Of a stretch of DNA of 64,000 bases, positions 4,566 to 59,660 are shown one piece after another. The stretch spans positions 558,001-622,000 of the forward strand of contig MU008151.1 of NCBI GenBank assembly GCA_010909165.1. Direction: 5' to 3'. Both the position numbers and the translations under genes were made by a program. Source of the DNA: Anthoceros angustus. Its lineage: Eukaryota > Plantae > Anthocerotophyta. Position 1 is the stretch's first letter, and each line of letters opens with the position of its first letter. The notes beneath the pieces were generated by a model. The model had not been told where the DNA came from. It ran no database searches and was given only the letters and a program-made list of their open reading frames with translations.

Positions 4566-6971
4566 TCACAAATTGATCTTCTGACATAGAGTGTCAAAGC
4601 CATATACAACTAATCTACATCCGTAAACCGCAAGAAACGACTAACTTCTATTCAAGTCTAGTGCGGGTGAAAGAAAGAATTAACTTCTCTTCAAGTCTTG
4701 TGTGGTAGGAGTAGACAACCACCTTCAGACCTATGCACTTCATAACTGAAAAGAGAAAACAAGAAAATCTGTACTGAAATGAGAAAGCTTTACAATACGG
4801 GAAGTCCTTTGCATGTCTATGATAGTGGCTCTAAACAAATGGAGAATAGACTCACGAACGTCCTAAGACAAGCTGATGCCTAGATAGATGCACGTCACAT
4901 GTAAAGACAAAAGAAAAGAGTTTCAAAACAAGAATTGGAAGAACAAACACATATGGTAAAGGAAAACATAGCAAACTAGAAAACGATGGAATGCAGAATC
5001 CAAGTTTACGTTGAACAAAGCTTGCAAGGTTAATCGTAACAAGGTAAATTACTTTTTATGCCATGCAAAAATGTGTAAGATTGTGTGTCGAGTTGTTTTG
5101 TCCATGATCTCACAATCCACATCTTAAATTTCAAGTTTGCGAAGTAATGTCTTGCATATTCTTGAAAAACTACAACTAAAAGCACGATTGTTAGATTCTG
5201 GAGTGTCCGCCAAGGCTTGCATCACATGCTTACATAATATCATAGAAGTAGCTAGCATGAAATGCTTAACTTTTCAATTCGTGCTGAAATTGAGCATCCC
5301 TTCTCCACCTTTAGAGGCATCATCCCTCATCCACAATCCATAAAGTCCGTTCAATCAAAAAATATCGTCCACACAATACATTGATTGCAATAAGCAAATC
5401 ATCCAAAATAAAATTGCCTAGAATGAAAATAATATTATTAAACACATAGAGGGTAGACTGGTACTGGGATGGGAAGTCCTAGTTGTAAGAGTTGAGAAAG
5501 AGAAATGCTAACATTAGTTCATTAATATTCCTTCCCATAGGCAACTAGTTTCATGAAACAACTATCTTAGTGACTTGCTGGAGATTGCATCCTCAACTAG
5601 TTCAGTTATATGTAGGCCATTCAATCTCCCGGGGAACTGAAGACTTTATTATAAAAAAGACATGGGAAAAACCCATGCACCCCAAAAACAAAGGGGGAAA
5701 ACCCAACGAAGGGCACTATTTTAGGGGGACTAGCCCCCACGATCCAATCTCCCTAGTCATGACATTGTAGGGACTGTAGGTGACTTTAGACATGAAGCTT
5801 AGTTTCTCCTTCCTGGGTCTCGTTTTGATGTACGTTAGCAGATGGGTTCACCCATCTCCTAATTTCCTTTGATAAAAACTTCAGTTTCGTGGAAGGTTTT
5901 CGAAGGTTTGGGATGCGAACGGTGGATACTTGCAACGGGAAGAACGCTGTAAGGTAGAGAGCCTGACAGCATTCGGATTCGGTGTTTGGCCAGGTGTCGG
6001 TTTCCCGGGGCACGGCATTTGGGTCCACTTCACTTCACGGGGAAGCGGAAGCGGGAAGATTATGGCGTTTGAAAATCTTGGTATTGCCTTCAACAAACGC
6101 TTTGGCTCGCCTTCGCGTTTCCCTCGCTCTTCGCCTTCCGCTCCTGGGCCTCACGCGCCGTCCCAGTGCACGTGCTTCTCCGATTCGCGCGCTCTGTCTT
6201 CCTGCGCCATCCGCGCATGTGGATGCGGCCCGGCCCGGCCAGGGCAGGCCCAGCGCTGCGTGCGCTTCTCGGGATGTGGTAATTCTGTTGCTTCCAGAAG
6301 CCTCCCCGAGGCCGCGTCCGGGAATGAGCGGTCATTTCTGATGAGGAGCTCTCCCTGCGCATGCGTTTTGGTGTGCAGGAGAGGTCGCTGGATGCGCCGG
6401 GTTCAAGCCTGAGGGATTTCGTGGAAGCTAAAGGCGCCAATTTCGCGGTTGTGTGACAGTTTCTGTGAGTGAAGCATTTTTGTGTTGCGGTTTCTGCGTG
6501 TGTGTGCTTCCTCTCGCATTTGCGCATGTTGCTGTGTGATTGAATGCCGGCGTGGTTAGGCTGACCGAAGTACAGGCATGACAAAAATAATATGTAGCTG
6601 GAACCGGAGTGGGAGAGGGTGGTGCTGCAGTGGGGGAATAGTAGGACGAGAGTGAACGAATGTGTTTGGTGGAATGGAATTTTAATGAACCTTGTATTGA
6701 ATTGGACGTAAGGAAGATTGTGTAACCGAATTTGGTGAAGAGATGTCCATTTTCCTCCCTGTGTCCGAGCAAACGTACACAAAAGTTGTCCCAGACTGAG
6801 ACTTTTGCGGTAGTCAATCATGAGAGCGGGATGGCGTTGCGTCTGGAGGCCCTGTTGTGGAGCGCTGCACCTGTGACGAAGGAGTCATGGGTTGAGGGGC
6901 ATGCATGATGAGGTCTGCTCTTCCCAGAGGTGGAAGATTTTGGGGAGTCAGCGGTGGAAGTGCAGGTAGAA

Positions 6972-31966: not shown

Positions 31967-34653
31967 TCACGGACGACCCTTGCAACTGCAACAACCATGC
32001 GCGAATCGATGCACACGGTACCCATCCCTTACAACAATGTCTCTCTGTTCGAGCCTTGACATGATCTCCGTGGAACTGTGGCAGTCACTGCACATGCGTA
32101 GATTCTTTGTTACGACAAGAGGTGTTCCATTCGGAGTGTTCAAGAGACCAAACGCCAGGGCTAGTTTCTCAGCATGCCCACAAAGCACATCTTCCTTTTC
32201 CATCTCACTCATTGGCTTCAACACCAATTTTGTGTGAGGTATGTGGCCTCCTTCCTGCTTCAGACGTGCACTCATGCTCTCTGCCTTTAGCGCAATATCA
32301 TCTTTTCTTTCCCCCACCACAAATGTATGTACCTGCTTCTTCACCTCAATGGTCGCCACTGCAGGTTTCTTGTTGGCTCCTGCTGCCAGCCTCTGTGTTT
32401 CAATCCTGTCTACATCCGTCCACCTACCTGCATCTGCATAGGCATTGGCCATAAGCACATACGCAGACGCCCGCTGAGGGTCTAGCCTAACGATGCTTTC
32501 AAAACACCACATCGCCCTCTTGATATCCCCGTGACTTTTGCAGGCATTCAACAAAGATGTCAAGCCCACAACATTATTTTGGCTCTCACATGATAACAGC
32601 ATGTTCTCAGCCTCATCTAAATTGCCTGCACGCCCAAGAAGATCAATCATGCAATTGTAATGGTCAGCAGTAGGTTTTATGCCATGCTGCTCAGCCATGG
32701 CATCAAAGTGCTTGCGACCCTCATCCACCAGTCCCTCATGACTGCATGCTACTAGAACGCAAGTAAAAGTTGCACCATTAGGCTGAACACCGGCAACTAA
32801 CATCTCCTCAAAACAAGCTAGTGCCTTGTGACCTTCATCACAGGCACCATACCCAGATATCAGGGCGGTCCACGTCACCACATCCTTTGTGGTCAAGCTG
32901 TCAAAAACCCGGCGTGCATCCTCCAGTTTGCCACATTTTGCATACATGTCCACCAGGCAAGTGCCCAACACTATGTTATCCAGCAGTCCACTTTTCACAA
33001 TCTGTGAGTGCAGCTGCCTGCCTTTCTGTAAGGCACCAGTGCTTCCACAGGCCTTCAGAAGGCAAGCAAATACAAAATCGTCAGCCAAAATGAGGCCCTC
33101 CTCCTCCATTTGTCCATACACAACAAGTGCCTCATGTCCGAGCCCTTGCTGGGCATACCCAGCAATCAGCGCTGTCCATGTCACCACATTCTTTGTGGCC
33201 ATGCTGTCAAAAACCTGGCGTGCATCTTCCAGTTCACCACATTTTGCATACATGTCCACCAGGCAGGTGCCCACCAGTACGTCATCCAGCAGTCCTCTTT
33301 CAACAATCTGTGAGTGCAGCTGCCTGCCCTTCTGTAAGGCACCAGTGCTTGCACACGCCTTCAGAAGGCAAGCAAACGTAACATGGTTAGCCAGAATGAG
33401 GCCCTCCTGCTCCATTCGTCCATACAGAATAAGCGCCTCATGTCCAAGGCCTTGCTGGGCATACCCAGCTATCAGGGCATTCCATGTCACCACATCCTTT
33501 GTGTGCATGCTGTCAAAAACCTGGCGTGCATCTTTCAGTTCACCACATTTTGCATACCCAGATATCAGGGCATTCCATGTCACAACATCCTTGTAGGCAT
33601 GCTGTCAAAAACCTGGCGTGCATCTTTCAGTTCGCCACATTTTGCATACATGTCCACCAGGCAGTTGCCAACAAACAGGTTAGCAGGAATCCCACTGTGC
33701 AACACATCACAGTGCACTTTTCTGCCAGATTCCAAGTCGGCGGCAAATGCACAAGCTTGAAGGGCAGCTACAAAGACGTGACCATTCGCCTTCACTCCTG
33801 ACCTACGCATCTCATGGTACAGTTGTATGGCCTCCTTAGGTTTCCCATGTTTAGCATGTGCAGAGATGATGGAACCACATGAAGACATCTGGTTTGCCTA
33901 CCCTGGTGAACACATCCATGGCCTCCTCTAGCCTACCTCCACATGCATACATGCGCAAGATATGGTTTCCCAAGTATGCATTCGACTCGTACCCAAATTT
34001 GACACACAGATCATGAACGCGTCGTCCCACAACCAAATCCTTCTTAGCTGTACACAGTTTCAGCACAGTGCAAAAAAGAGAGTCGGAAATAGCACAGCCT
34101 GTCTGCGCCAGAGATTCCAGGGCTCCAACGGCCTCAGAAAGCTTTCCCTCCTGACAGAACGTGCTCACGGTTACAGCCGTAACCACGTCCATTTCCGATG
34201 TTGCACGCCTCCCAGATTCAGGCTTATTCGGAGGGCTCGACTTGGAAGGAGAGACACCATGACCCATCCGAACATCGAATGAAACGAGCTGCTCATCAAC
34301 CCAAGCTGGCTTGTGCATGCTGCTCAACCACAGCACCTCGCCGGACACCTTACGCCGGAAGTCAGGCGAACGGGAGCTCTTCTTATCTCGTCTGTTGTCC
34401 CACCACAGGGTAGGGTCCAGGAAAAATTGTTGCCACAAGTGCTCCTGCTCCTGGCGACGACCATCGTTGGAAACCCGTCCCACCCAGACATTCTCGGAAG
34501 TGGCTGGCTTACACTGCTGCACCTGGAGGCTTTGTTTGCCAGGGGTTGAGTCCCTGAGATGACGTGAGCGGGAGCTCCTGGTAGAATCCCTGTACACACA
34601 CCGTTTGCAATTTGTTGGGTCCACAACGGGTCCTGTTGCCATACTGTGGCCAT
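31967..34653 (-). CDS. PLS-PPR-E1-E2-DYW:KP (GRP-type) protein with N-terminal PDF-like motif, copy A; full length, ~3 frameshifts (~34500, ~33875, ~33590) that may be real or assembly errors
   Basis: The 538-aa C-terminal ORF has P-L-S triplets at 306-bp spacing, P2-L2-S2, E1/E2, and KKPAVATIEV...LCGHAEKLALAFGL...KNLRMCSDCH...RDGYRVHRFAHGCCSCKGRP*. Upstream frames give WWDNRRDKKSSRSPDFRRK and ATG 34653 (MATVWQQ). Confidence 0.85.
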
Positions 34654-35082
34654 CGTTCTAGGCCAGCTGTCGGAAGATGAGTCTTACAACAGACTCAAAA
34701 GCAGGATGCCCAGGAGAGAGCAGAAGGCATTGGTACCTCAAACAAACACCTTATGGTTTCAAAGATCTGGCTACAAATTGACATGTACACCCACCGCGCA
34801 AGTATCCAACTCAGTCTGGAAGAGATTCATTCGATTCTGACATCTCCGTTATGATAGAGGTAGATCAGTCGAGATGTATACAGTATATTGTGCTAAGGTG
34901 AGAAGTATGAAAGCACACCAGCATGCCCTCCACGCACTCCATACGCAACTAGGTGAAAATATGCGATCAAAGACAACCAAATACCCTTGCAATGCCCAAG
35001 CTTGCTTCCCCACGATCCACTCCAAACCAGGCTCGAGACCTGCAAAAGGTGAGCATAGCCTACCTCCCATCACCAAGAGGGG

Positions 35083-35893
35083 CGAGCTGCTCATCAACCC
35101 AAGCTGGCATGTGTTGTTTAACCACAGCACCTCGCCGGACACCTTACGCCGGAAGTCAGGCGAACGGGAGCTCTTCTTATCTCGTCTGTTGTCCCACCAC
35201 AGGGTAGGGTCCAGGAAAAATTGTTGCCACAAGTGCTCCTGCTCCTGGCGACGACCATCGTTGGAAATCCCGTGCCCACCCAGACATTCTTGCGGCTGTG
35301 GAAGTGCTGGGCTCCTCAGACTGCTGCACCTGGAGGCTTTGTTTGCCAGGGGTTGAGTCCCTGAGATGACGTGAGCGGGAGCTCCTGGTAGAATCCCTGT
35401 ACACACACCGTTTGCAATTTGTTGGGTCCACAACGGGTCCTGTTGCCATACTGTGGCCATCGTTCTAGGCCAGCTGTCGGAAGATGAGTCTTACAACAGA
35501 CTCAAAAGCAGGATGCCCAGGAGAGAGCAGAAGGCATTGGTACCTCAAACAAACACCTTATGGTTTCAAAGATCTGGCTACAAATTGACATGTACACCCA
35601 CCGCGCAAGTATCCAACTCAGTCTGGAAGAGATTCATTCGATTCTGACATCTCGTTATGATAGGTGATCAGTCGAGATGTATACAGTATATTGTGCAAGG
35701 TGAGAAGTATGAAAGCACACCAGCATGCCCTCCACGCACTCCATACGCAACTAGGTGAAAATATGCGATCAAAGACAACCAAATACCCTTGCAATGCCCA
35801 AGCTTGCTTCCCCACGATCCACTCCAAACCAGGCTCGAGACCTGCAAAAGGTGAGCATAGCCTACCTCCCATCACCAAGAGGGGCGAGCTGCT
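35083..35893 (-). pseudogene. Copy B: ~800-bp tandem duplication of the copy A promoter and N-terminus, truncated after the PDF-like motif
   Basis: 34285-35082 is repeated at 35083-35884. The breakpoints share cgagctgct (34285, 35083, 35885). Confidence 0.85.
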
Positions 35894-36079
35894 GCGCGGA
35901 GCGAGCTCCTCATGTGCAGCTTGTTTCCCGCCATAAGTCGCCAAAGCAAACCAGAATCGATTCCCCTAATGCCTGGTAGAGCACACGGAAGTAGGTGATG
36001 TACGTACAACGGGCGAGATGTACGGTAATGCATGTATGCATGTCCAGCCTAGGCCTTCTCTATATCCCCGTGATCTATG

Positions 36080-36900
36080 CAGGCATTCGACAAAGCCGTC
36101 AAGCCCACAACATTACTTTGGCCCTCACACATGATACGAGCATGTTCTCGGCCTCATCTGAAATCGCGTGCACGCCCAGGAAGATGAATTATGCAATTGT
36201 AATAGTCAGTAGTAGGTTTGATGCCATGCTGTTCAGGTGTCGAATCAAAGTGCTTGCGACCCTCATCCACCAGCCCCTCATGCTACTAGAAGGCAAGGAA
36301 AAGTTGCATCATAAGGGTCCATACTGGCAACTAACACCTCCTCAAAACAAGCTAGTGGCCTTCATCACGAGCACCATACTCATATACCAGGGCATTCCAT
36401 GTCCCCACATCCTTTGTGGCCAAGCAGTCAAAAACCCGGCGTGCAGACTCCAGTCTGCCACATTTTGCGAATGTCCCCCAGGAAGTTGCCCAACACTACA
36501 TCATCCACCAGTCCTCTTTCGACAATCAGTGAGAGCAGCTGCTTGCCTTTCTGTTAGGCACCAGTACTTGCACAGGCCTTCAGAAGGCAAGCAAATATAA
36601 CGTAAATGAGGCCCTCTTCCCCATTTGTCCATATACAACCAGCGCTTCATGTCCGAGCCCATGCTGGATGACATTCTTTGTGGCCATGCTGTTGAAAACC
36701 CAACGTGCACCTTTCGGTATCCACCAGGCAGTTGCACTACATCATCCAGCAGTCCTCATTCGACAATCAGTGAGTACAGCTGACTGACCTTGACAACTTG
36801 CACAGGCCTTCAGAAGGCAAACAGAAGTAACATGGATAGCCAAAGGCAGGCATTCGTCCATACACGACAACCGCCTCATGTCCGAGCCCTTGCTGAGCAC
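36080..36900 (-). pseudogene. Copy C: heavily decayed PLS-PPR/E fragment
   Basis: Fragmentary matches to copy A sequence (aagcccacaacatta, tcaaagtgcttgcgaccctcatccacca, cacaggccttcagaaggcaagcaaa) with many deletions and substitutions. Confidence 0.75.
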
Positions 36901-36920
36901 TGGCTATGTCTTGCTTTTTC

Positions 36921-37555
36921 TCACGGTCGGCCCTTACAACTGCAACAACCATCAGCGAATCGATTCACACGGTACCCATCTCTTGAAACAATGTCTCTCT
37001 GTTCGAGCTCCGTCGAACTGTGGCCTTCATGCTGTCGAAAACCTGGCGTGCATCTCTCAGTTCACCACATTTTGCATACCCAGATATCAGGGCATTCCAT
37101 GTCACAACATCCTTTGTAGGAATGCTGTCAAAAACCTGGCGTGCATCTTTCAGTTCGCCACAATTTGCATACATGTCCACCAGGCAGTTGCCAACAAACA
37201 GGTTAATAGGAATGCCAGTGTGCAACACATCACCGTGCACTTTTCTGCCAAATTCCAAGTCGGCCGCCAATGCACAAGCTTGAAGGCAGCTACACAGACG
37301 TGACTACTCGCTTTCACTCCTGACCTACGCATCTCATGGTACAATCGTATGGCCTCATTCGCTTTCCCCCGTTTAGCATGTGCAGAGACGATGGAAGACC
37401 ACGTGAAAACATCTGGTCTGTTTATCGTGGTGCACACATCCATGGCCTCCTCTAACCTCCCTCCCCACTGCTGCACTTGGAAGCTTGGTAGTTTACCGGG
37501 GACTGAAGCCCTGAAGTGAGGTAAGCGGGAGGTCCGGTTGCCATATAGCGGACAT
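36921..37555 (-). pseudogene. Copy D1: internally deleted PPR-DYW:KP derivative (few PPR motifs joined out of frame to the DYW tail)
   Basis: GGRLEEAMDV...[26 protein letters not shown], then a jump into STELEQRDIVSRDGYRV...CSCKGRP-coding sequence. No PDF-like motif. Confidence 0.8.
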
Positions 37556-37811
37556 CGTTCAGGGACCGCTGTCGACAAATGAGGTGAACACCAGACTCTG
37601 GAAGGCTGCCCAGGTACCGTGCATGAGCACACCAACCTGAAGGATCGTGCAAACGTTGTCTTTCCGGCATCCCAGAAGACATAAGTGATAGGATTCGCAG
37701 TGTGCAATGGCACGTATGCTTCGATCACGATGTGTAAGGCCTCCGTGCCAGAAAGAGACATCCATACTTGTCTAACTATCTCTGTTACTACTGCCTAGTT
37801 CTTCATTATTC

Positions 37812-38434
37812 TCAAGGTCGGCCCTTACAACTGCAACAACCATTTGCGAATCGATGCACACGGTACCCATCCCTTGAAACAATGTCTCTCTGTTCGAGCT
37901 CCGTCGAACTGTGGCCTTCATGCTGTCGAAAACCTGGCGTGCATCTCTCAGTTCACCATTTTGCATACCCAGATATCAGGCATTCCATGTCACAACATCC
38001 TTTGTAGGAATGCTGTCAAAAACCTGGCGTGCATCTTTCAGTTCGCCACAATTTGCATACATGTCCACCAGGCAGTTGCCAACAAACAGGTTAATAGGAA
38101 TGCCACTGTGCAACACATCACCGTGCACTTTTCTGCCAAATTCCAAGTCGGCCGCCAATGCACAAGCTTGAAGCAGCTCACAGAGTGACTACTCGCTTTC
38201 ACTCCTGACCTACGCATCTCATGGTACAATCATGGCCTCATTCGCTTTCCCCCGTTTAGCATGTGCAGAGACGATGGAAGACCACGTGAAAACATCTGGT
38301 CTGTTTATCGTGGTGCACATCCATGGCCTCCTCTAACCTCCTCTAACCTCCCTCCCACTGCTGCACTTGGAAGCTTGGTAGTTTACCGGGACTGAAGCCT
38401 GAAGTGAGGTAAGCTCAGTTCCATATGCGGACAT
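37812..38434 (-). pseudogene. Copy D2: tandem duplicate of D1 (~880-bp unit including the upstream flank)
   Basis: Nearly identical to 36921-37811 apart from small deletions. Confidence 0.8.
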
Positions 38435-38684
38435 CGTTCAGGGACCGCTGTCGACAAATGAGGTGAACACCAGACTCAGGCTGCCCAGGTACCGTGCATG
38501 AGCACCAACCTGAAGGATCGTGCAAACGTTGTCTTTCCGGCATCCCAGAAGACATAAGTGATAGGATTCGCAGTGTGCAATGGCACGTATGCTTCGATCA
38601 CGATGTGTAAGGCCTCCGTGCCAGAAAGAGACATCCATACTTGTCTAACTATCTCTGTTACTACTGCCTAGTTCTTCATTATTC

Positions 38685-41583
38685 TCAAGGTCGGCCCTTA
38701 CAACTGCAACAACCATTTGCGAATCGATGCACACGGTACGCATCCCTTACAACAATGTCTCTCTGTTCAAGCCTTGACATGATCTCCGTGGAACTGTGGC
38801 AGTCACTGCACATGCGTAGATTCTTCGTTACCACCAGAGGTGTCCCACTCGGAGTGTTCAAAAGCCCAAACGCTAGAGCAAGTTTCTCAGCATGCCCACA
38901 AAGCATATCTTCCTTTTCCTTCTCACTTAGTGGCTTCAGCACCAATTTTGTGTGAGGTACGTGGCCTCCTTCCTGCTTCAGACGTGCATTCGTGCTCTCT
39001 ACCTTTGAGGCAATATCATCTCTCCTTTCTCCTACAGCAAATGTATGTACCTGCTCCTTCACCTCAATGCTCGCCATTGCAGGCTTCTTGTTAGCTCCTG
39101 CTACCAGTCTCTGCGTCTCAATCCTGTTTACATCGGTCCATCTACCTGCATCTGCATAGGCATTAGCCATGAGAACATAGGCAGAAGCCCGCTGAGGGTC
39201 CAGCCTAACAATGCTTTCAAAACACCACATCGCCCTCTTGATATCCCCGTGACTTTTGCAGGCAGTCAACAAAGACGTCAAGCCCACAAGATTACATTGG
39301 CCTTCGCATGATAACAGCATATTCTCAGCCTCATCTAAATGGCCTGCACGCCCAAGAAGATCGATCATGCAATTGTAATGCTCAGTAGTAGGATTGATGC
39401 CATGCTGTTCAGCCATGGAATCAAAGAACATGCGACCCTCATCCACCAGTCCCTCATGACTGCATGCTACGAGAAGGCAAGAAAACGTTGCGTCATTAGG
39501 CTGAATTTCGGCAACTAACATCTGCTCAAAACAAGCTAGTGCCTTGGGACCTTCATCACAAGCGCCATACCCAGATATCAGGGCATTCCATGTCACCACA
39601 TCCTTTGTGGCCAAGCTGTCAAAAACCCGACGTGCAACATCGAGTTTGCCACATTTTGCGTACATGTCCACCAGGCAATTGCCCAACACTATGTTATCCA
39701 GGAGTCCTCTTTCGACAATCAGTGAGTGCAGTTGCCTGCCCTTCTGTAAGGCACCAGTGCTTGCACAGGCTTTCAGAAGGCAAGCAAAAATAACATCGTC
39801 AGCCAAAATCAGGCCCTCCTGCTCCATTTGTCCATACACAAGCGCCTCTGGCCGAGTCCTTGCTGTGCATACCCAGCAATCAGGGCATTCCATGTCACCA
39901 CATCCTTTGTGGCCAAGCTGTCAAAAACCTGGCGTGCATCTTCCAGTTCACCACATTTTGCATACATGTCCACCAGGCAGTGCCCACGTCATCCAGGAGT
40001 CCTCTTTCGACAATCAGTGAGTGCAGTTGCCTGCCCTTCTGTAAGGCACCAGTGCTTGCACAGGCTTTCAGAAGGCAAGCAAAAGTAACATCGTTAGCAA
40101 AAATCAGGCCCTCCTGCTCCATTTGGTCATACACCACAAGCGCCTCATGTCCGAGCCCTTGCTGTGCATACCCAGCTATCAGGGCATTCCATGACACCAC
40201 ATCCTTTGAGGCCAAGCTTTCAAACACCTGGCGTGCAACTTCCAGTTCACCACATTTCGCATACATGTCCACCAGGCAGTTGCCCAACACTACGTCATCC
40301 ATCAGTCCTCTTTCGACAATCTGTGAGTGCAGCTGCCTGCCCTGCTGTAAGGCACCAGTGCTCGCACAGGCATTCAGAAGGCAAGCAAATGTAACATCGT
40401 TAGCCAAAAGCAGGCCCTCCTGCTCCATTTGTTCATACACAAGAAGCGCCTCATGTCCAAGCCCTTGCTGGGCATACCCAGCAATCAGGGTCGTCCATGT
40501 CACCACATTCTTTGAGGCCAAGCTATCAAAAACCTGGCGTGCATCTCTCAATTCGCCACATTTTGCATACATGTCCACCAGGCATGTGCCAACAAACAAG
40601 TTAGTAGGAATGCCACTGTGCAACACATCACAGTGCACTTTCCTGCCAGATTCCAAGTCTGCCGCCAATGCACAAGCTTGAAGTGCAGCTACAAAGACGT
40701 GAGCATCCCCCTTCACTCCTGACCTACGCATCTCATGGTACAATTGTATGGCCTCATTCGGTTTCCCCTGTTTAGCATGTGCAGAGATGATGGAAGACCA
40801 CGTGAAAACATCTGGTCTGCCTATCCTGGTGAACACATCCATGGCCTCCTCTAACCTACCTCCACATGCATACATGCGCAAGATATGGTTCCGCACGTAT
40901 GCATTCGACTCGTACCCAAGTTTGACACTGAGATTGTGAACTCGCCCCCCCACAACCAGGTCCTTCTTAGCTGTACACAGTTTTAGCACAGTGCAAAACA
41001 GAGACTGAGGAACAGCATAGTCTGTCTGCGCCAGAGATTCCAGGGCTCCAACGGCCTCACCAAGCTTCCCCTGTTGACATAACATGCTCACGGTTCCAGC
41101 CGTTACGAAGCACATTTCCGATCTTGCACGCCCGCCAGGTTCAGGGTTACTCGGAGAGCTCGAGTTGGAAGGAGAGGCACCATGACCCATCTGCATATCC
41201 AAGGAAACGAGCTGCCCATCAACCCAAGCTGGTTTGAACGTGTTGTTTAACCACAGCACCTCGCCGGACCCCTTACGTCGGAAATCAGGCGAACGGGAGC
41301 TCTTCTTATCTCGTCTGTTGTCCCACCACAGGGTAGGTTCCAGAAAAAATTGTTCCCACAGGTGCTCCTGCTCCTGGCCGCGACCATCACTGCAAAACTC
41401 GTCCCCACCCACAGATCGTGTCGTAAGTGGAAGTGCTGGGCTCCTTACACAGCTGCACCTGGAGGCTTTGTTTGCCAGGGGTTGACTCCACAAGATGAGG
41501 TGAGTGGGAGCCCCTCGTAGATTCCCTATACACACACCAAATTGTTGGGTCCACAACGGGTGTGGTTCCCGAATTGTGGCCAT
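38685..41583 (-). CDS. PDF-like + PLS-PPR-E-DYW:KP (GRP) copy E; best-preserved member (~960 aa), broken only by small deletions around 39850-39985
   Basis: 562-aa ORF (transit-like peptide, HLWEQFFLEPTLWWDNRRDKKSSRSPDFRRKGSGEVLWL, PLS triplets) plus a 402-aa ORF ending KKPAMASIEV...HAEKLA...CSDCH...CCSCKGRP*. Confidence 0.88.
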
Positions 41584-41851
41584 CGTTCAGGCATCGCTGT
41601 TGGAAGTTGAGGCTAAAAACTGGCTTCTGGCAAGATGGCCGGTTACTTCGCATGACCACACCACCCCGAAGGATGGTGTAGACTAAAAACCTTGAAAAGG
41701 GGTAGGTACGCTAGTTTCGAAGTTTCGAACAGCAGATATGCTAAGCACATCTGCGAGAAAGAGAGATTCATTCGATTCGGACCATCTCCCTTATGACGGA
41801 GAGGTGGATCAGTGTTCATAACCATCCTGGTCCCTGTCCCAGTTTGGACAG

Positions 41852-43276: not shown

Positions 43277-44251
43277 TCACGGTCGCCCTTACAACTGCAA
43301 CAACCAGCTGCGAATCGATGCACACGGTACCCATCCCTTACAACAATGTCTCTGTTCAAGCCTTGACATGATCTCCGTGGAACTGTGGCAGTCACTGCAC
43401 ATGCGTAGATTCTTCGTTACCACCAGAGGTGTCCCACTCAGTGTTCAAGAGACCAAACGCCAGAGCTAGCTTCTCAGCATGCCCACAAAGCACATCTTCC
43501 TTTTCCTTCTCACACAGTGGCTTCAACACCAACTTTGTGTGAGGTACGTGGCCTCCTCTAGCCTACCTCCACATGCATACATGCGCAAGATATGGTTCCC
43601 AAGTATGCATTCGACTCGTACCCAAGTTTGACAGTGAGATCATGAACTCGCCCCACAACCAAATCCTTCTTAGCTGTACACAGTTTTAGCACAGTAAAAC
43701 AGAGACTGAGAATAGCAGAGTCTGTCTGCGCCAGAGATTCCAGGGCTCCAACGGCCTCAGAAGCTTCCTGCTGACATAACATGCTCACGGTTCCAGCCGT
43801 TACGACGCCCATTTCCGATCCTGCACGCCTGCCAGGTTCAGGCTTATCCAGAGCTCGACTTGGAAGGAGAGGCACCATGACCATCTGCATATCCAAGGAA
43901 ACGAGCTGCTCATCAACCCAAGCTGGCTTGAACATGTTGTTTAACCACAGCACCTCGCCGGACCCCTTACGCCGGAAGTCAGGCGAACGGGAGCTCTTCT
44001 TATCTCGTCTGTTGTCCACCACATGGTAGGTCCAGAAAAATTGTTGCCACAAGTGCTCCTGCTCCTGGCGACCATCACTGAAAATCGTCCCCACCCACAG
44101 ATTCTCGGGTGGAAGTGCTGGGCTCCTTACACTGCTGCACCTGGAGGCTTTGTTGCCAGGGTTGACTCCACAAGATGAGGGAGCCCTCGTAGAATCCCTA
44201 TACACACACCAAATTGTTGGGTCCACAACGGTGTGGTTCCCATGTGGCCAT
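43277..44251 (-). pseudogene. Copy F: PDF-like N-terminus fused out of frame to the distal DYW after loss of nearly all PPR motifs
   Basis: The junction tggcctcct (43549-43557) joins first-S-motif sequence to DYW 'EGGH' sequence. Many 1-3-bp deletions. Confidence 0.8.
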
Positions 44252-44573
44252 CGTTCAGGCATCGCTGTTGGAAGTTGAGGCTAAAACTGGCTTCTGGCAA
44301 GATGGCCGGTTACTTCGCATCACCACACCACCCCGAAGGATGGTGTAGACTAAAAACCTTGAAAAGGGGTAGGTACGCTAGTTTCGAAGTTTCGAACAGC
44401 AGATATGCTAAGCACATCTGCGAGAAGAGATTCATTCGTCTCTGACCATCTCCCATGACGGAGAGGTGGATCAGTGTTAACCATCCATGTCCATGTCCCA
44501 GCGATGGAGTACATCACCCAGAAGACATAAAACAATGTTCTCTGGCCTATACATGAGCAGTTCTTCATTATTC

Positions 44574-46073: not shown

Positions 46074-48359
46074 TCACGGTCGCCCATTACAACTGCAACA
46101 ACCATTTGCGAATCGATGCACACGGTATCCATCCCTTACAACAATGTCTCTCCGTTCAACCCTTGACATTATCTCCGTGGAACTGTGGCAGTCACTGCAC
46201 ATCCGTAGATTCTTCGTTACCACCAGAGGTGTGCCACTGGGAGTGTTCAAAAGACCAAACGCCAGAGCTAGTTTCTCAGCATGCCCACAAAGCTGATCCT
46301 CCTTTTCCATTTCAGACAGAGGCTTCAACACCAAATTTGTGTGAGGTACGTGGCCTCCTTCCTGCTTCAGACGTGCATTCGTGCTCTCTACCAGCGCAAT
46401 ATCCTCTCTCCTTTCTCCCACCAGAAATCTATGTACCTGCTTATTCACCTCAATGGTCGCCACTGCAGGTTTCTTGTTAGCTCCTGCTATTCTCTCTTCA
46501 ATCCTGTCTACATCCCACCTACCTGCATCTGCATAGGCATTGGCCATGAGCACATCAGACGCCCTGGGGTCCAGCCTAACAATGCTTTCAAAACACCACA
46601 TCGCCCTCTCTATTCCCCATGACTTTTGCAGGCATTCAACAAGACATCAAGCCCACAACACTTTGGCCCTCACATGACAATAGCATCTTCTCAGCCTCAT
46701 CTAAATGGCCCGCACGCCCAAGAAGATCAATCATGCAATTGTAATGCTCAGTAGTAGGCTTGATGCCATGGTGTTCAGCCATGGAATCAAAGTGCTTGCG
46801 ACCCTCGTGACCAGTCCTCATGACTGCATGCTACTAGAAGGCAAGTAAAAGTAGCATCATCAGGCTGAATACCGGCAACTAACATCTCCTCAAAACAAGC
46901 TAGTGCTGCGAGACCTTCATCACAAGTACCAGATCAGGGCGGTCCATGTCACCACATCTTTGTGTTCATGCTGTCAAAAACCTGGCGTGCATCTTCCAGT
47001 TCACCACATTTTGCATACATGTCCACAGGCAGGTGCCCACCAGTACGTCATCCAGCAGTCCTCTTTCGACAATCTGTGAGTGCAGCTGCCTGCCCTTCTG
47101 TAAGGCACCAGTGCTTGCACAGGCCTTCAGAAGGCAAGCAAAAGTACATGGTAGCCAAAATGAGGCCCTCTGCTCCATTTGTCCATACAGAACAAGCGCC
47201 TCATGTCCGAGCCCTTGCTGGCATACCCAGCTATCAGGGCATTCCATGTCACCACATCCTTGGTCATGCTGTCAAAAACCTGGCGTGCATCTTCAGTTCA
47301 CCACATTTTGCATACCCAGCTATCAGGTGTCCATGTCAACTTTGTGGCATGCTGTCAAAAACCTGGCGTGCATCTCAATTCTTGCATACATGTCCACCAG
47401 GCAGTTGCCAACAAACAAGTTAGCGGAATGCACTGTCACACATCACAGTGCACTTTTCTGCCAGATTCCAAGTCAGCAAATGCACAAGCTTGAAGGGCAG
47501 CTAAAGACGTGACCATTCGCCTTGACTCCTGACCTACGCATCTCATGGTACAGTTGTATGGCCTCCTTAGGTTTCCCATGCTTTGCATATACAGAGATTA
47601 TGGAACCACATGAAGGCATCTGGTTTGCCACCCTGGTGAACACATCCATGGCCTCCTCTAGCCTACCTCCCACATCCAGCAAGAGATATGGTTCCCCAGT
47701 ATGCATTCGACTCGTACCCAAATTTGACACACAGATCATGAACCCGTCGTCCCACAACCAAATCCTTCTTAATGTACACAGTTTCATGTGCAAACAGAGA
47801 GTCGAAATAGCAGAGTCTGCGCCAGAGATTCCAGGGCTCCAACGGCCTCAGAAAGCTTCCCTGCTGACATAACATGCTCACGGTTCCAGCCGTTCGACGT
47901 CCATTTCCGATCCACGCCAGGTTCAGGCTTATCCAAAATCGACTTGGAAGGAGGCACCATGACCATCTGCATATCCAAGGAAACGAGCTGCTCATCAACC
48001 CAAGCTGGCTTAAACATGTTGTTTAACCACAGCACGTCGCTGGACCCCTTGCGCCGGAAGTCAGGCGAACGGGAGCTCTTCTTATCTCGTCTGTTGTCCC
48101 ACCACATGGCAGGGTCCAGAAAAAATTGTTGCCACAAGTGCTCCTGCTCCTGGCGACGACCATCGTTGGAAATCTCGTCCCCACCCAGACATTTTCTCTG
48201 AAGTGGAAGTGCTGGGCTCCTTACACTGCTGCACCTGGAGGCTTTGTTTGCCAGGGGTTGACTCCATAAGATGAAGTGAGCGGGAGGCCCTCGTAGAATC
48301 CCTGTGCACGCGCCAAATTGTTGGGTCCACAACGACTCTGGTTCCCGAATTGTGGCCAT
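46074..48359 (-). pseudogene. Copy H: full-length PDF-like + PLS-PPR-E-DYW:KP with many small deletions
   Basis: ATG 48359 (MATIREPESLWTQQ...WWDNRRDKKSSRSPDFRRK). Tail reads KKPAVATIEV...DQLCGHAEKLA...CCSCNGRP*. Fragmented across frames. Confidence 0.78.
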
Positions 48360-48832: not shown

Positions 48833-49792
48833 TCACGGTCGACCTCAACAACTGCAAACCATTTGCGAATCGATGCACACGGTACCCATCCCTTACAACA
48901 ATGTCTCTGTTCAAGCCTTGACATGATCTCCGTGGAACTGTGGCAGTCACTGCACATAGATTCTTCGTTACCACCAGAGGTGTCCACTCGGTGTTCAAGA
49001 GACCAAACGCCAGAGCTAGCTTCTCAGCATGCCCACAAAGCGCATCTTCCTTTTCCTTCTCAGACAGTGGCTTCAACACCAATTGTGTGAGGGTATGGCC
49101 TCCTCTAGCCTACCTCCACATGCATACATGCGCAAGATATGGTTCCCCAAGTATGCATTCGACTCGTACCCAAGTTTGACAAGATCATGAACTCGTCCCC
49201 ACAACCAAATCCTTCTTAGCTGTACACAGTTTCAGCACAGTGCAAACAGAGACTGAGAAATGGCAGAGTCTGCGCCAGAGATTCCAGGGCTCCAACGGCC
49301 TCAGAAAGCTTCCCTGCTGCTGACATAACGGTTCCAGCCGTACGACGCCCATTTCCGATCCTGCACGCCTGCCAGGTTCAGGCTTATCCCGAGCTCGACT
49401 TGGAAGGAGAGGCACCATGACCCATCTGCATATCCAAGGAAACGAGCTGCTCATCAACCCAAGCTGGCTTAAACTGTTGTTTAACCACAGCACCTCGCCG
49501 GACCCTTACGCCGGAAGTCAGGCGAACGGGAGCTCTTCTTATCTCGTCTGTTGTCCACCACATGGTAGGGTCCAGAAAAAATTGTTGCCACAAGTGCTCC
49601 TGCTCCTGGCGACGACCATCGCTGGAAATCCGTCCCCACACATTTCTCGGAAGTGGAAGTGCTGGGCTCCTTACACTGCTGCACCTGGAGGCTTTGTTTG
49701 CCAGGGGTTGACTCCTAGTGAGGTGAGCGGAGCTCCTCGTAGAATCCCTGTGCACACAATTTGTTGGGTCCACAACGGGTTCCCTTGGCCAT
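48833..49792 (-). pseudogene. Copy I: internally deleted derivative with the same junction as copy F
   Basis: tggcctcct junction at 49096-49104. PDF-like region and DYW tail (DALCGHAEKLALAFGLLN) are both present. Confidence 0.78.
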
Positions 49793-50138
49793 CGTTCAGG
49801 ACCCTGTTGGATGACTACATGGCTTCTGCAGGATGCCAGTACTGCATGACCACACCAGAGGATGGTGCAGACAGTTCACCTAGGTGTGGTGAAGCCAAAC
49901 AGAATCCAGCTTGTTCAGTCAGGAAGAGACTGTTGATTTGACCATTCAGAGAGGACACATCCTGTCATGTCAGTTTCACAGGATTTGCATTAGAAAAAGA
50001 TGTTCTCTATTCCAAGAGATTCATTGTCTGAGTTGAGAGGTGGATCAGTGTTAACCATCCATGTCCATGTCCAGGATGGAGTTAAGCAAACCCAAGAAAA
50101 GCAATGTTCTCTGGCGTACACTGAGTTCTTCATTCTTC

Positions 50139-53066
50139 TCACGGTCGACCCTTACAACTGCAACAACCATTTGCGAATCGATGCACACGGTACCCATCCC
50201 TTACAACAATGTCTCTCTGTTCAAGCCTTGACATGATCTCCGTGGAACTGTGGCAGTCACTGCACATGCGTAGATTCTTCGTTACCACCAGAGGTGTCCC
50301 ACTCGGAGTGTTCAACAGACCAAACGCCAGAGCTAGCTTCTCAGCATGCCCACAAAGCATCTTCCTTTTCCTTCTCAGACAGTGGCTTCAACACCAACTT
50401 TGTGTGAGGTGGCCTCCTTCCTGCTTCAGACGTGCATTCGTGCTCTACCTTTAAGCAATATCCTCTCCTTTCTCCCACCAAAATCTATGTACCTGCTTCA
50501 CCTCAACGTCGCCACTGCAGGTTTCTTGTTAGCTCCTGCTACCATTCTCTGTGTTTCAATCCTGTCTACATCGGTCCACCTACCTGCATCTGCATAGGCA
50601 TTGGCCATGAGCACATGCAGACGCCTCCTGAGGGTCCAGCCTAACAATGCTTTCAAAACACACCACATCGCCCTCTCTATCCCCGTGACTTTTGCAGGCA
50701 TTCAACAAAGACGTCAAGCCCACAACATTACTTTGGCCCTCACATGATAGCATCTTCTCAGCCTCATCTAAATGGCCCGCACGCCCAAGAAGATCAATCA
50801 TGCAATTGTAATGCTCAGTAGTAGGCTTGATGCCATGCTGTTCAGCCATGGAATCAAAGTGCTTACGACCCTCATCAGTCCTCATGACTGCATGCATGCT
50901 AGGCAAGTAAAAGTAGCATCATTAGGCTGAATACCGGCACTAACATCTCCTCAAAACAAGCTAGTGCCTTGTGACCATCACAAGTACCATACCCAGATAT
51001 CAGGGCATTCCATGTCACCACATCCTTTGTGTTCATGCTGTCAAAAACCTGGCGTGCATCTTCCAGTTCACCACATTTTGCATACATGTCCACCAGGCAG
51101 GTGCCCAACTACACATCCGTCCTCTTTTGACAATCTGTGAGTGCAGCTGCCTGCCCTTCTGTAAGGCACCAGTGCTTCCAGGCCTTCAGAAGGCAAGCAA
51201 AACATCGTTCAGCCAAACAGGCCCTCCTCCATTTGTCCATATACAACAAGCGCCTCTTGGCCAAGTCCTTGCTGTGCATACCCAGATATCAGGGCCGTCC
51301 ATGTAACCACATCCTTCGTGTTCATGCTGTCAAAAACCTGGCATGCATCTTCCAGTTCACCACATTTTGCATACATGTCCACCAGGCAGGTGCCCAACAC
51401 CACGTTATCCAGGAGTCCTCTTTTGACAATCTGTGAGTGCAGCTCCCTGCCCTTGTGTAAGGCACTAGTACTTCCACAAGCCTTCAGAAGGCACGAAAAA
51501 GTAACATCGTCAGCCAAAATGACGCCCGCCTCCTCCATCTGTCCATACACAACAAGTGCCTCTTGGCCGAGCCCTTGATGTGAATACCCAGCAATTAGGG
51601 CATTCCATGTCACCACATCCTTTGAAGCTAAGCTGTCAAAAACGTGGCGTGCATCTTCGAGTTCACCACACTTGGCATACATGTCCACCACGCAGTTGCC
51701 CAACACTACGTTATCTAGCAGTCCTCTTTCAACAATCAGTGAGTGCAGCTGCCTGCCCTTCTGCAAGGCACCAGTGCTTGCACAGGCCTTCAGAAGGCAA
51801 GCAAAAGTAATATGGTTAGCCAAAATCAACCCTTCCTGCTCCATTTGTGCATACAGAACAAGCGCCTCATGTAGCCCGCATATCCAGCTCATTCCATGTC
51901 ACCACATTCTTTGTGTCCATGCTGTCAAAAACCTGGCGGGCATCTTTCAGTTTACCACATTTTGCATATCCAGAGATCAGGGCATTCCATGTCACCACAT
52001 CCTTTGTGGCCATGCTGTCGAAAACCAGGCGTGCATCTTTCAGTTCACATTTTGCATACATGTCCACCAGGCAGTGCCAACAAACAAGTCAGGAGGAATG
52101 CCACTGTACCACATCACAGTGCACTTTTCAGATTCCAAGTCGGCGGCAAATGCACAAGCTTGAAGGGCAGCTACAAAGACGTGAGCATCCTTCACTCTGA
52201 CCTACGCATCTCATGGTACAGTTGTATGGCCTCATTAGGTTTCCCATGCTTAGCATATGCAGAGATTATGGAAAACCACATGAAGGTATTTGGTTTGCCC
52301 ACCCTGGTGAACACATCCATGGCCTCCTGCAGACTCCCTCCACATGCATACATGCGCAAGATATGGTTCCCCAAGAATGCATCGGACTCGTACCCGAGTT
52401 TAACAATGAGATCATGAACTCTTCGCCCCACAACCAAGTCCTTCTTGGCTGCACACAGTTTTAGCACAGTGTAAACCAGAGACTGAGAAATAGCAGAGCC
52501 TGTCTCCGCCAGAAATCCCAGGGCTCCAACCGCTTCAGAAAGCTTCCTCTGCTCACATAACGTGCGCACGGTTACAGCCGTTACGGCGCCCATTTCCGAT
52601 CCTCCGCGCCTGCCAGGTGCAGGCTTCTCCGGGGGGCTCGACTTGGAAGGAGAGGCACCATGACCCATCTGCATATCCAAGGAAACGAGCTGGTCATCAA
52701 CCCAAGCTGGCTTGAACGCATAGTGTCTATCCACAGGACCTCGCCGGAGCCCTTACGTCGGAAGTCAGGCGAACGGGAGCTCTTCTTATCTCGTCTGTTG
52801 TCCCACCACATGGTAGGATCCAGAAAAAATTGTTGCCACAAGTGCTCCTGCTCCTGGCGACCACCATCGGTGGCAAAACCGACCCCACCCACACATTTTC
52901 TCGGAAGCGGAAGCCCTGGGCTCCTCACACTGCAGCACCTGGAGGCTTGGCTGTTTGCCGGGGATTGACTCCTGGAATTGAGGTGGGCGGGAGCTTCTCG
53001 TAGAATTCCTGTACACACATCAGTTTGTTGGGTCCACAACGGCTCCGGTTGCCATACTGTGGCCAT
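50139..53066 (-). pseudogene. Copy J: full-length PDF-like + PLS-PPR-E-DYW:KP, frameshifted in this sequence (possibly intact in vivo)
   Basis: ATG 53066 (MATVWQPEPLWTQQ...PTMWWDNRRDKKSSRSPDFRRKGSGEVLWI). PLS ORFs at 52192-52734 and 51209-51892. Tail MLCGHAEKLA...CCSCKGRP*. Confidence 0.8.
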
Positions 53067-56522: not shown

Positions 56523-59244
56523 GCTTCTGGATCCATCTGCAGGCCAACAGCAACAAGGACCCCGGCTGGAGCTCCTGGACTAAGGGCCTTACAACTGTTA
56601 GCATTCCTGCGGCAATGTGGTGAGACTGGCAAGTATTTCCTAAGCATTTCTTCCTTAGGCCTGTGGACATGTTTAGCACAGATTTCGGGAGCTTGGAGGA
56701 AATTGCCCAAGATTCGTTACAAGTTCTATACGAGATTCTCGATGACGAACTCGTCCAACTGTGCTAGCTAGGCTAGCTAGCTCATTGCACTGTGCAGGAT
56801 GCATTCTTTTGTTGTGCAGGATGCATTTTTTTGTCGTGCAGATGCAGTGGTTGAATTGTAGATGTAGCCATCAGATTCTGCTTCCAACCTCCAGATAGAT
56901 GGATCGTGAAGGCATCCATCCATGGTTAAAAACCTCAACAGATTGTCAGACTTGGAGGGCTACCTTGGTAGACTTGTGCATGGTTGATAACAATTTACAA
57001 ACCGCCTCAAAGGTTCACTTAGCCTGTGGTGAAACTACAGATGTTGGCTCCCTCCAGGAGGCACGCGTGCTTTGCAGGTGTATTATTTACTATTATGCTG
57101 CTGCTGCAGGCATGGTTGGTCCCCAATCCCCCACGGAGGCGCCGTTGATGAGCGTCTGGCCAAGGGAGACGTACATGTTCTTGGACTTGTCAGCATGGGA
57201 GTCGAAATCGATGAAGATGGGTTTCTTGGTCCTCTCTCTCCTTGATGGCCAGGGAGGAGTTGCTAAGGACTCGTCTACTGAGGTAGCGAGCGGGATGGAG
57301 CGAGTCGATAAGCTCCTCGACAGGCCCGATGCCTGAAAACGATTATGTATCGGAGAAAACAATAATTTATTGGTACAGGGAAAAGGGTTTATATACACAT
57401 GTTTTGATGGTTATAACTGCCTAACTGCGGTTAGCGATAAAAACTGATTCGCTAAACTAGGCCTGAGTATGAGAAAATCAAACTTAAGTTCTGGGGAAAC
57501 GTGCCCTAATGCATCACGAGCTGATTCGCGTGCGCTGAACCTAAATGGCTATGCCACAACACTCCCCTTCGCTGCGAATGTGCTGTTCGTCAATCTGCTG
57601 GTCGTCAATCTACTGCTGATTATCTGGTGCCTTCATCAGCTCGTGAGTCACGTGATCACAACTGTGATTCAAGGGATCGGAAGTCTTAAGCGGCTGAAGT
57701 CCCCAAGCACAGATCTCGCAGAGCCAAAATTGGGAAGCAGTCATGGAGAACCATTCCTCATTCTACTGTACAGCAGACTTGCCAATGTGTCAGCATGAAG
57801 GAGCTCTGGATTCGCAGAAATCCAACTCGACCAGATGACGCTGAAGTGAGTAGCAGATGTGAAAATGCTGGTGAAAGCAGTCATTGTGGTCAGAAGGCAG
57901 CTCCCCCCTAAGTTGAACTCCTTAGGCCCTGAAGACTAGGCAGTTGTCCCAGACGGGACTCTAGCGAACCGTCCTAGATGATCTCTCACACGACCTCGAG
58001 ATTGCTGAGGCTCAGGAGAAGACATGGCAGAAATCCTGTTCAGAACCCACTCACGCGTAATGGAAGACAGGAAGAACAAGAAGAGTAGAAGTGTGGCACA
58101 CCTCGTCGCAGGTGACCTCTCTCCGACACGATCCATAAAGTATCGGACGAGCGACCAACGGGGCGTAACCCGACACCTGCAGTCTACGCAGCCTACGCTC
58201 CAAACTTTCATCACAGCTGAAGATATAGAGAAGAATCGCGCTGCAAACACGTACTACCATTTCAACACCGAGATATGTGAAGAATACCATAGATGTGCGT
58301 TCAACACCGAGTGAGATATGATCAATAAGTGAAGAATACCATAGATGTGTGCTGACGCATATTTAGGGTTTAGAGTTTTAGATAAAGTATTTATATATTG
58401 ATTATTAATAATAGATATTAATCGAGGGTCACATCTTTTCATTAGGGTCACACCCGTAAATGCATAGGTAGTCATGTGTAGGTAAATGTATCTATTCATC
58501 CTAGTTTTAAGTTGCTTTTACTTAGTGTTATATAGATATTCTTTTCTTGATGATTTAATGTGTAATTACTTAAATTATATGAAGTAATTGGTGTACATCG
58601 ACCTATAAAATTAACATTAAAGCCTACCACAGCCGTAGGAATGTGGTTGGTCTGCCCCTTTCTTGTGTGATGGCTTTTTTCAGGCAACGGATGTTCATGG
58701 CCCTGTAGACTAGGAGTTCTCCCCTATGGACAGTGCTGCAAAGTGGGTCTTCAACAATAGCCATTTTTCCTTCTCGTACGCCGCCATCTTCATGCTCCGC
58801 CTCTCACCACGTTCAGCCTTGCTCGGTTCATGATTCAAAACATTCGCACACCCTTGGTATGGTCGTCCCACAAGCATTTTGAGCAGCCCACTTTCAGCCA
58901 GCAGAAATGAGGGTTTGCAAACCCTCATGAAATGCAATTTAGTAACTATAATCTGCCTAACTATATAATAAGAAATTGTCACGATGCTATGATATGACAA
59001 TGACCAAATAAGCACTCACTAGCTAAACACGTAGTCATATACTCTAATCTCAGCTTCACTATATCATTTTCATGATTGCCGCTTGCGTGGCATGAAGATT
59101 TTTTCACAAGAAAGAGTCATTGAAATGTGGTTTAATGAAATTACGAATAAATTTAAAATCAAAATTATTATATTAAAAATATAATACAAATAAAATATTC
59201 TTCTATAATAAAATTACTATCTTTTATATATAAGATAGGGAACA

Positions 59245-59660
59245 AAACCGAGAATGGTCTACACTCTTGTTCTGAATGTAACATTGAGTGTAGTAGATCT
59301 TTCACTTCGTGTGAGATGTTGGGCCATTCATCTAGGTCCAATTGACTTATCCATTCTCCTTTTTCGGTGTCAAACTCATATCCTATGTAAGGACAATTTA
59401 CGGTTAAAACTTCATACAAAATGACTCCCGTGCTCCAATTATTAGCTTTTGAAGTATAGCTTGTGTTTACGTCATCTTCCGAGTCCAATACCTCCGGAGC
59501 CATGTAACATGGGGTTCCTGCAGCTCCCCTGTACAATAATTCCATTTTGGAGACATGGAACAGACAAACCAAAGTCTGCTAGTATGACTTTGAGATGGCT
59601 AAGTAATAATAGATTAGCCGGTTTCAAATCACGATGCATAACATTATGCCACATGGCAAA
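59245..59660 (-). pseudogene. Ser/Thr protein kinase pseudogene (C-lobe only, frameshifted, intronless)
   Basis: VMHRDLKPANLLL...ILADFGLS, then a frame change to AGTPCYMAPEVL...KANNWSTGVILYEVL...WPNISHEVKDLLHSML...RP. The subdomain-IX Asp is replaced by Asn, and no N-lobe motifs are visible. Confidence 0.82.

Follow-up and report, generated by a model that had tools for sequence, protein, structure and literature searches.

A PDF motif of OSB type at the N-terminus of PPR-DYW:KP genes in a decaying tandem array of Anthoceros angustus

What could a motif of DNA-binding proteins do at the front of RNA-editing-factor genes? The question is raised by a stretch of 64,000 nucleotides (nt) from the hornwort Anthoceros angustus (assembly GCA_010909165.1, contig MU008151.1, positions 558,001 to 622,000 of the forward strand; hereafter the window). 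It contains an array of pentatricopeptide repeat (PPR) genes with a DYW:KP end, in which a short segment precedes the PPR tract. The initial annotation had assigned this segment to the PDF motif of the plant organellar single-stranded DNA-binding (OSB) proteins. In OSBs, an SSB/OB-like domain is followed by PDF motifs (PMC6963530, PMC4166229). The PDF motif of AtOSB1 reportedly suffices for the binding of single-stranded DNA (ssDNA) (PMC6963530, PMC4166229), and OSB1 and OSB2 are reported to prefer ssDNA to double-stranded DNA or RNA (PMC4166229). In hornworts, lycophytes and ferns, PLS-class PPR-E-DYW:KP proteins are candidates for the factors of U-to-C editing (Gutmann 2020 and Gerke 2020, cited in PMC11845758).

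The PDF motif in the window

On the minus strand, positions 41209-41376 encode QEQEHLWEQFFLEPTLWWDNRRDKKSSRSPDFRRKGSGEVLWLNNTFKPAWVDGQL, which is contained in a 562-aa open reading frame (ORF) with an ATG start (41583..39895). A tblastn search of the window with the segment returned seven copies of the motif, all seven on the minus strand, the same number of array members as had been annotated. The translations also agree with the annotated position between a transit-like peptide and the PPR tract: the N-terminal presequence is followed by the PDF motif and then by the PPRs. The copies are given here with their scores against the OSB_PDF hidden Markov model (HMM) described in the next section.

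Copy A PDF module: 41179..41406, minus strand; found by tblastn; 76.8 bits, E 5.7e-23; AlphaFold2 pLDDT 82.9
Copy A PDF core (QEQEH...QLVSL, residues 70-128): 41200-41376, minus strand
Copy B PDF: 47964-48182, minus strand; intact; 77.6 bits
Copy C PDF: 34256-34468, minus strand; intact; 78.3 bits
Copy D PDF: 35104-35277, minus strand; diverges past about 58 residues; 65.8 bits
Copy E PDF: 52657-52886 (52886-52722 plus 52716-52657), minus strand; frameshift between 52722 and 52716, after residue ~55; 66.7 bits
Copy F PDF: 43882-44079, minus strand; scrambled over about 5 residues between paired small indels; 59.4 bits
Copy G PDF: 49414-49629, minus strand; frameshifted mid-motif; 24.0 and 15.9 bits in two frames

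A complete motif in frame is held by only three of the seven copies (A, B and C, at 41k, 48k and 34k). Within the PDF core, a run of 46 nt (window 41330-41285, minus strand; codons WWDNRRDKKSSRSPD) is free of substitutions in all seven copies, and its sole change is the loss of 1 nt common to copies F and G.

Homology to the OSB PDF motif

A profile built from six window copies (profile A1) was searched against 1.84 billion representative sequences. At E<=1e-3 there were 663 matching proteins, of which 204 reached E<=1e-10; architectures were counted in the best 150 of the 663. An SSB/OB-like domain followed by one to four PDFs was found in 68 of these 150. This is the published OSB architecture, which supports the identity of the window motif as an OSB PDF. 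Among them is P0023, recorded as 'protein OSB1, mitochondrial-like [Populus nigra]', with a match at E 1.3e-28 and a Pfam SSB domain at residues 74-167.

The search was also run in the opposite direction, as the initial annotation had proposed, with an HMM of OSB PDFs. This model (OSB_PDF) was made from 153 PDF segments of the 68 SSB-bearing proteins and includes no window sequence; the segments were recruited via the window-derived profile, so that their boundaries depend on it, while their content does not. Against the six-frame translation of the window the model matched exactly seven loci (E 1.2e-23 to 4.7e-6, up to 78.3 bits) and nothing outside them. Six loci scored 59-78 bits (E 1e-17 to 1e-23), and the frameshifted seventh reached 1e-6.

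The signature can be read directly in the window translation, where Pro-Asp-Phe is flanked by W, WWDNR, LW and P.WV. Across 126 aligned PDFs, those of the window included, D29, R31, K34, D41 and F42 are invariant, and W17, P24, W27, P40, L51, W52, P59 and W61 are at least 90% conserved. The full signature (W..F..P..WWDNR..K....PDF..K....LW....P.WV) is retained in the PDFs that are borne by PPR proteins. A Pfam scan of the 76-aa segment gave no family model that matches the motif. Two word-index searches (a 300-aa query, region 60-135; a 562-aa query, region 1-200) came back blank, a result that is uninformative under the word and length limits of such searches. As judged by profile, reciprocal HMM, the match to the OSB1 of Populus nigra and the fold described below, the assignment was right: the window segment is a true PDF module, the motif of about 50-60 aa that defines the plant OSB proteins.

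Predicted fold

The 76-aa segment was modelled with AlphaFold2 from the 126-sequence alignment, at a predicted local distance difference test (pLDDT) score of 82.9. This confident model consists of a helix, three short strands and a second helix. In the ESM Atlas it was superposed with a template-modelling score (TM) of 0.83 and a root mean square deviation of about 2 Å on a Streptophyta cluster that carries SSB. The comparison with OSB PDFs that had been suggested is thus favourable as far as predicted models go. The same model also matches three Streptophyta PPR/DYW clusters at TM 0.83, with 57-127 members each.

Among solved structures, Foldseek gave nothing below E 2.9 and VIA-align reached a best Z of 4.2; a search of the ESM Atlas by features gave no usable match. 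Two Atlas clusters of hypothetical proteins from Uroviricota (tailed phages; 187-199 aa) were matched at TM 0.61-0.63 over 59-64 residues. They could represent a distant structural relative of the PDF fold, or a chance match of a small domain.

The host genes

The domains behind the PDF motif were identified in copy A, whose two ORF pieces (39895-41583 and 38685-39893) served as separate queries in every search. Pfam recognises PPRs (PF01535 and PF13041) at E 1e-48 or better, the E motif (PF20431) at E 3e-10 and the DYW_deaminase family (PF14432) at E 3.8e-35. Only PPR, E and DYW families were returned by the scan of both pieces, and PF00436 (SSB/OB) was not found.

Copy A gene: 38685..41583, minus strand; presequence, PDF, Ser/Pro-rich linker, PLS PPR tract, E motif, DYW:KP
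Copy A DYW:KP domain: 38685..39086, minus strand; 133 aa, KP start, Lys88, HAE...CSDCH, GRP and stop; PF14432
Copy C DYW:KP (GRP) domain: 31967-32371, minus strand; read from the sequence

The DYW:KP domain is distinguished by Lys-Pro in place of Pro-Gly at its start, by Lys88 and by HxE...CxxC (PMC11845758). The KP start reads NKKPAMASIEV in copy A and NKKPAVATIEV in copy C; both copies have HAEKLA, CSDCH and the terminal GRP. Counting 133 residues from KP, a Lys is found at position 88 (TKNLRMCSDCH). The Pfam result and the residues together agree with the annotated DYW:KP domain ending in GRP. By their domain order, the host genes are of the PLS-class PPR-E-DYW:KP editing-factor type, with the PDF motif fused in frame at the N-terminus.

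Like PLS-class PPR-E-DYW:KP proteins, the window genes have a PPR tract, an E motif and a DYW-type domain of 133 aa with KP at its start, Lys88, HxE...CxxC and a non-DYW end (GRP). They differ in the additional folded PDF module at the N-terminus, which lies outside the available published domain description, and in that the window copies are frame-broken. With the OSB proteins they share a PDF of about 50-60 aa whose signature (W, P, WWDNR, K, PDF.HK, LW, P.WV) agrees, significant profile matches both ways, the same predicted fold and an N-terminal presequence. OSBs, however, have one to four C-terminal PDFs after the OB-like domain, whereas the window genes have no SSB/OB-like domain and a single N-terminal PDF that is followed by PPRs and a deaminase-like domain. 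Because of these two differences, the window genes are not members of the OSB family, and the module alone is shared.

The fusion in other plants

PPR proteins with one to three N-terminal PDFs make up 10 of the best 150 profile A1 matches. The named sources are Diphasiastrum complanatum (two loci), Adiantum capillus-veneris (two proteins), Ceratopteris richardii and Pteridium aquilinum. In the last case, a transcriptome ORF joins the PDF and the PPRs in one reading frame, which is evidence for the module in the mature mRNA of a fern. A further protein, P0095 (locus L001), is an intact PDF-PPR-E-DYW protein of 753 aa with a GRP end; it is 50-64% identical to the window pieces, and its signature is degenerate (RDF, CWDIR). 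As far as these sequences can tell, the PDF-PPR architecture is old, being present in ferns, in a lycophyte and in P0095.

The named proteins of Diphasiastrum (KAJ7570437.1), Adiantum (KAI5076972.1) and Ceratopteris (KAH7429238.1) resemble the window genes in having one or two N-terminal PDFs followed by PLS PPRs. In contrast to the window genes, they end in E motifs and have no DYW domain. The pairing of PDF and PPR is therefore not specific to KP editors, and the module is not tied to the KP clade.

A tree was made from the 126 PDFs (73 columns). One clade of 12 rows unites seven of the ten PPR-borne PDFs, the window copies and the short unassigned proteins P0074 and P0119, with a support of 88 in the Shimodaira-Hasegawa-like approximate likelihood ratio test (SH-aLRT). 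The PDFs of Adiantum and Ceratopteris group with those of the window, those of Diphasiastrum fall outside that clade, and P0095 is nearest to the window copies. When all 13 PPR-borne PDFs were forced together, the likelihood was better than that of a quick free search, and the arrangement was not rejected by the approximately unbiased test (p-AU 0.63). The 73 columns are compatible with one ancient origin of all PPR-borne PDFs.

A literature search yielded only OSB reviews and no PDF-PPR fusion, which may nevertheless be mentioned in Gutmann 2020 or Gerke 2020. The one paper found with both 'PDF motif' and 'pentatricopeptide' deals with PPRs only in the context of RNA polymerase.

PDF motifs beyond OSB and PPR proteins

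Other matches extend the range of the motif. The proteins P0001, P0002, P0003, P0005 and P0011 consist almost wholly of PDF repeats, in 8-12 copies, and P0002 (Kingdonia uniflora) has an SSB-like domain near its C-terminus in addition. Such PDF-only arrays lie outside the published OSB description that was consulted. In P0048 (KAF9616283.1, Coptis chinensis), three PDFs (189-388) precede the motor domain of a kinesin (458-765), either as a genuine fusion or through a merger of gene models. Judged by its distribution over PPR proteins, PDF-only arrays and a kinesin, the PDF motif is a mobile module and not confined to OSBs.

Conservation and selection

Among the seven copies, the nucleotide identity of the PDF core is 92-97%, compared to 70-80% for the linker and the first PPRs. 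Synonymous (pS) and non-synonymous (pN) divergence was compared in two pairs of copies, as follows.

A vs C, PDF core: pS 0.19, pN 0.07, pN/pS 0.37
A vs C, linker and first PPR: pS 0.19, pN 0.12, pN/pS 0.62
A vs B, PDF core: pS 0.17, pN 0.06, pN/pS 0.33
A vs B, presequence: pS 0.13, pN 0.13, pN/pS 1.0

The comparison rests on 8-10 non-synonymous and 6-7 synonymous changes. Synonymous divergence is equal in core and flanks and the extra conservation is found at replacement sites, which fits past purifying selection on the protein module. A constraint at the nucleotide level behind the near-invariant core was ruled out, as the pS of the core (0.17-0.19) equals that of the flanks.

The initial annotation had held the motif to be better conserved than the linker and had taken this as a sign of selection. 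The first part stands, on the identities given above; for the second, the window offers only a small signal. A stronger argument than the pN/pS within the window is that the full signature is kept in ferns, in a lycophyte and in the A. angustus genome. Selection on the PDF module is supported by the comparison across species, and weakly within the array.

A decaying tandem array

An uninterrupted frame from the presequence to the DYW end is found in none of the seven copies. In copy A, the frame shifts twice inside a single PPR motif, once through the loss of about 11 nt at ~39984-39980, with which VLGN disappears, and once through the loss of 1 nt at ~39850. The remaining copies and remnants are the following.

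Copy B gene: 46077..48359, minus strand; PDF intact, body needs at least 4 frame changes
Copy C gene: 31967..34653, minus strand; PDF intact, presequence in another frame, frame changes near 33873 and 33589
Copy D: 34852..35490, minus strand; N-terminal fragment only, no PPR tract after the PDF
Copy E gene: 50142..53066, minus strand; PDF frameshift and several more frame changes in the body
Copy F: 43285..44280, minus strand; internally deleted, with the first PPR followed directly by DYW residues 309-400, which are split over three frames
Copy G: 48858..49875, minus strand; PDF frameshifted, internally deleted, DYW remnant kept
PPR/DYW remnants between copies D and A: 36052..38323, minus strand; tblastn fragments without PDF (none found by the HMM)

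The remnants at 36052-38323 include two short C-terminal DYW fragments (37022-36924 and 37913-37815, minus strand) and are further products of decay.

Could these breaks be errors of the assembly? Copies F and G have a 1-nt deletion in the WW codons in common, which points to real lesions that were inherited. Intact ORFs of 937 and 1438 aa occur elsewhere in the window and argue against an assembly that is generally error-ridden. The copies lie head-to-tail, have 150-200 nt of 5' flank in common and show no poly(A) tracts. They are tandem duplicates, and an origin of the array by retrocopying was ruled out by these same three features.

Public sequencing runs were compared with positions 38600-41700. 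The best four (X1-X4, labelled as four different organisms, none of them on record as RNA) gave thousands of short unitigs at 94-99% identity, none of which spans a frame break. Judged by this pile-up of short unitigs, there seem to be extremely many copies of the PDF-PPR-DYW:KP family across this group of organisms.

The seven copies of the window are most likely pseudogenes in a decaying tandem array, to go by their reading frames. It had been proposed initially that they would encode tripartite nucleic-acid-binding proteins with a deaminase fold. Such products are unlikely from these copies, all seven of which are frame-broken, truncated or internally deleted.

Proposed role of the PDF module

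PPR repeats are aligned parallel to the RNA that they bind, and the nucleotide on which the DYW domain acts lies just 3' of the footprint. Once an intact member has been imported into the organelle, its PPR tract would read the RNA in parallel and its DYW:KP domain would act on the target nucleotide 3' of the footprint. The N-terminal PDF module would then sit on the RNA 5' of the PPR footprint or cis-element. There it would probably serve as a single-strand clamp on RNA without sequence specificity. The effect of the clamp would be a higher affinity, a longer residence time or a cis-element held unfolded. Since the aromatic and basic signature is kept, and since ssDNA binding is the only published activity of the PDF motif, a single-strand clamp is the most economical reading. 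Nucleoid tethering, unwinding and the recruitment of a cofactor, as suggested in the initial annotation, are likewise hypothetical. On balance, the locus is best described, with modest confidence, as a true PDF module fused to PLS-class PPR-E-DYW:KP genes, in an array that has decayed here and whose intact members would use the module as an accessory single-strand clamp 5' of the footprint.

Several points weigh against this description. The preference of OSB1 and OSB2 for ssDNA over RNA would fit a role on DNA at least as well as a clamp on RNA (PMC4166229). The clamp role of PDF-PPR proteins is a prediction from homology and signature, and the PDF fold is, as modelled, without a solved relative, so that structure offers no mechanism. 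All seven window copies are broken. No transcription was seen for them: the public runs yielded only short multicopy unitigs, and none of these runs is recorded as RNA. The signal of selection within the window is weak: it rests on fewer than 20 substitutions, in pairs that are not independent. Finally, the degenerate signature of P0095 shows that the module can drift while the gene around it stays intact.

The alternatives are taken in descending order of probability. The first is unlikely: the PDF module would keep its preference for ssDNA and anchor the editor to the nucleoid. The sites for such a tether would be single-stranded organellar DNA in transcription bubbles, R-loops or replication intermediates, and editing would be co-transcriptional. 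The ssDNA preference of OSB1 and OSB2 and the sufficiency of the AtOSB1 PDF for ssDNA binding (PMC4166229, PMC6963530) speak for it, as does the full OSB signature of the PPR-borne PDFs. However, binding may be far weaker for a PPR protein that is monomeric and has a single PDF than for the multi-PDF or tetrameric OSBs. The PPR tract, moreover, already puts the protein on RNA, and the N-terminus adjoins the RNA on the 5' side, where the clamp is placed in the preferred reading.

A more far-reaching proposal is rather doubtful. Here, the PDF module would belong, as a functional accessory of ancient date, to the machinery with which seedless land plants edit their RNA; it would couple PPR editors to single-stranded organellar nucleic acid and would have been lost in seed plants. 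The accessory may take one of two forms, either a built-in helper that replaces trans-acting editing helpers or a nucleoid tether for co-transcriptional editing. If true, an accessory layer would have escaped notice because the N-terminus is left out of models and synthetic designs.

It is improbable that the PDF module mediates oligomerisation or the recruitment of partners rather than the binding of nucleic acid. Candidate partners would be OSB or other nucleoid proteins or, for the E-class members, a trans-acting DYW protein. PDF-only arrays of up to 12 copies and the kinesin are what would be expected of a versatile adaptor, and most of the named PDF-PPR proteins are of the E class without a deaminase and would need a partner. 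ssDNA binding is the only activity published for the motif, though, and its conserved residues are aromatic and basic, as is typical of nucleic-acid contacts.

Still less probable is a passenger relic, a module that was captured once and has no current role, the conservation in the array reflecting recent duplication of dead genes. This would agree with the broken state of all seven copies, with the deletion common to F and G (part of the similarity was inherited by duplication) and with the loss of several signature residues in P0095. Nevertheless, the signature is kept in ferns, in the lycophyte and in the A. angustus genome, pN is lower in the PDF core than in its flanks although pS is equal, and the fold is present in three Atlas clusters that comprise 57-127 PPR/DYW proteins each.

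A chance or low-complexity resemblance to the PDF motif, without common ancestry, is refuted by the profile search, the reciprocal HMM (E 1e-23), the named OSB1 (E 1.3e-28) and the Atlas fold match (TM 0.83 to the SSB-bearing cluster); no point in its support was found beyond the lack of a Pfam model and the blank word-based searches.

Programmable RNA editors of the C-to-U and U-to-C kinds are being engineered from PPR-DYW factors, whose accepted architecture is a PPR tract with E and DYW domains. To this, the present finding adds a conserved, folded module before the PPR tract that is predicted to bind nucleic acid and is common to the DNA-maintenance proteins OSB1-4. With it, natural editing factors would possess a component that has so far gone unrecognised. 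The window itself adds little, as it holds only decayed copies.

Other features of the window

Three further features lie outside the array.

PPR ORF: 17586-20399, plus strand; intact, 937 aa, P-class, about 20 PPR motifs
Long ORF: 6930-11246, plus strand; 1438 aa
Kinase ORF piece: 59168-59572, minus strand

The best database relatives of the 937-aa ORF are 28-31% identical. They are PPR proteins of angiosperms, algae and protists, none above 31% identity, and the exact sequence is absent from the protein collection that was searched. The 1438-aa ORF has only a sub-threshold Pfam match, to the tubulin-binding region of CPAP (E 4e-4). The ORF piece at 59168-59572 matches the C-terminal half of the protein kinase domain (PF00069, E 1e-14) and is probably one exon of a kinase gene.

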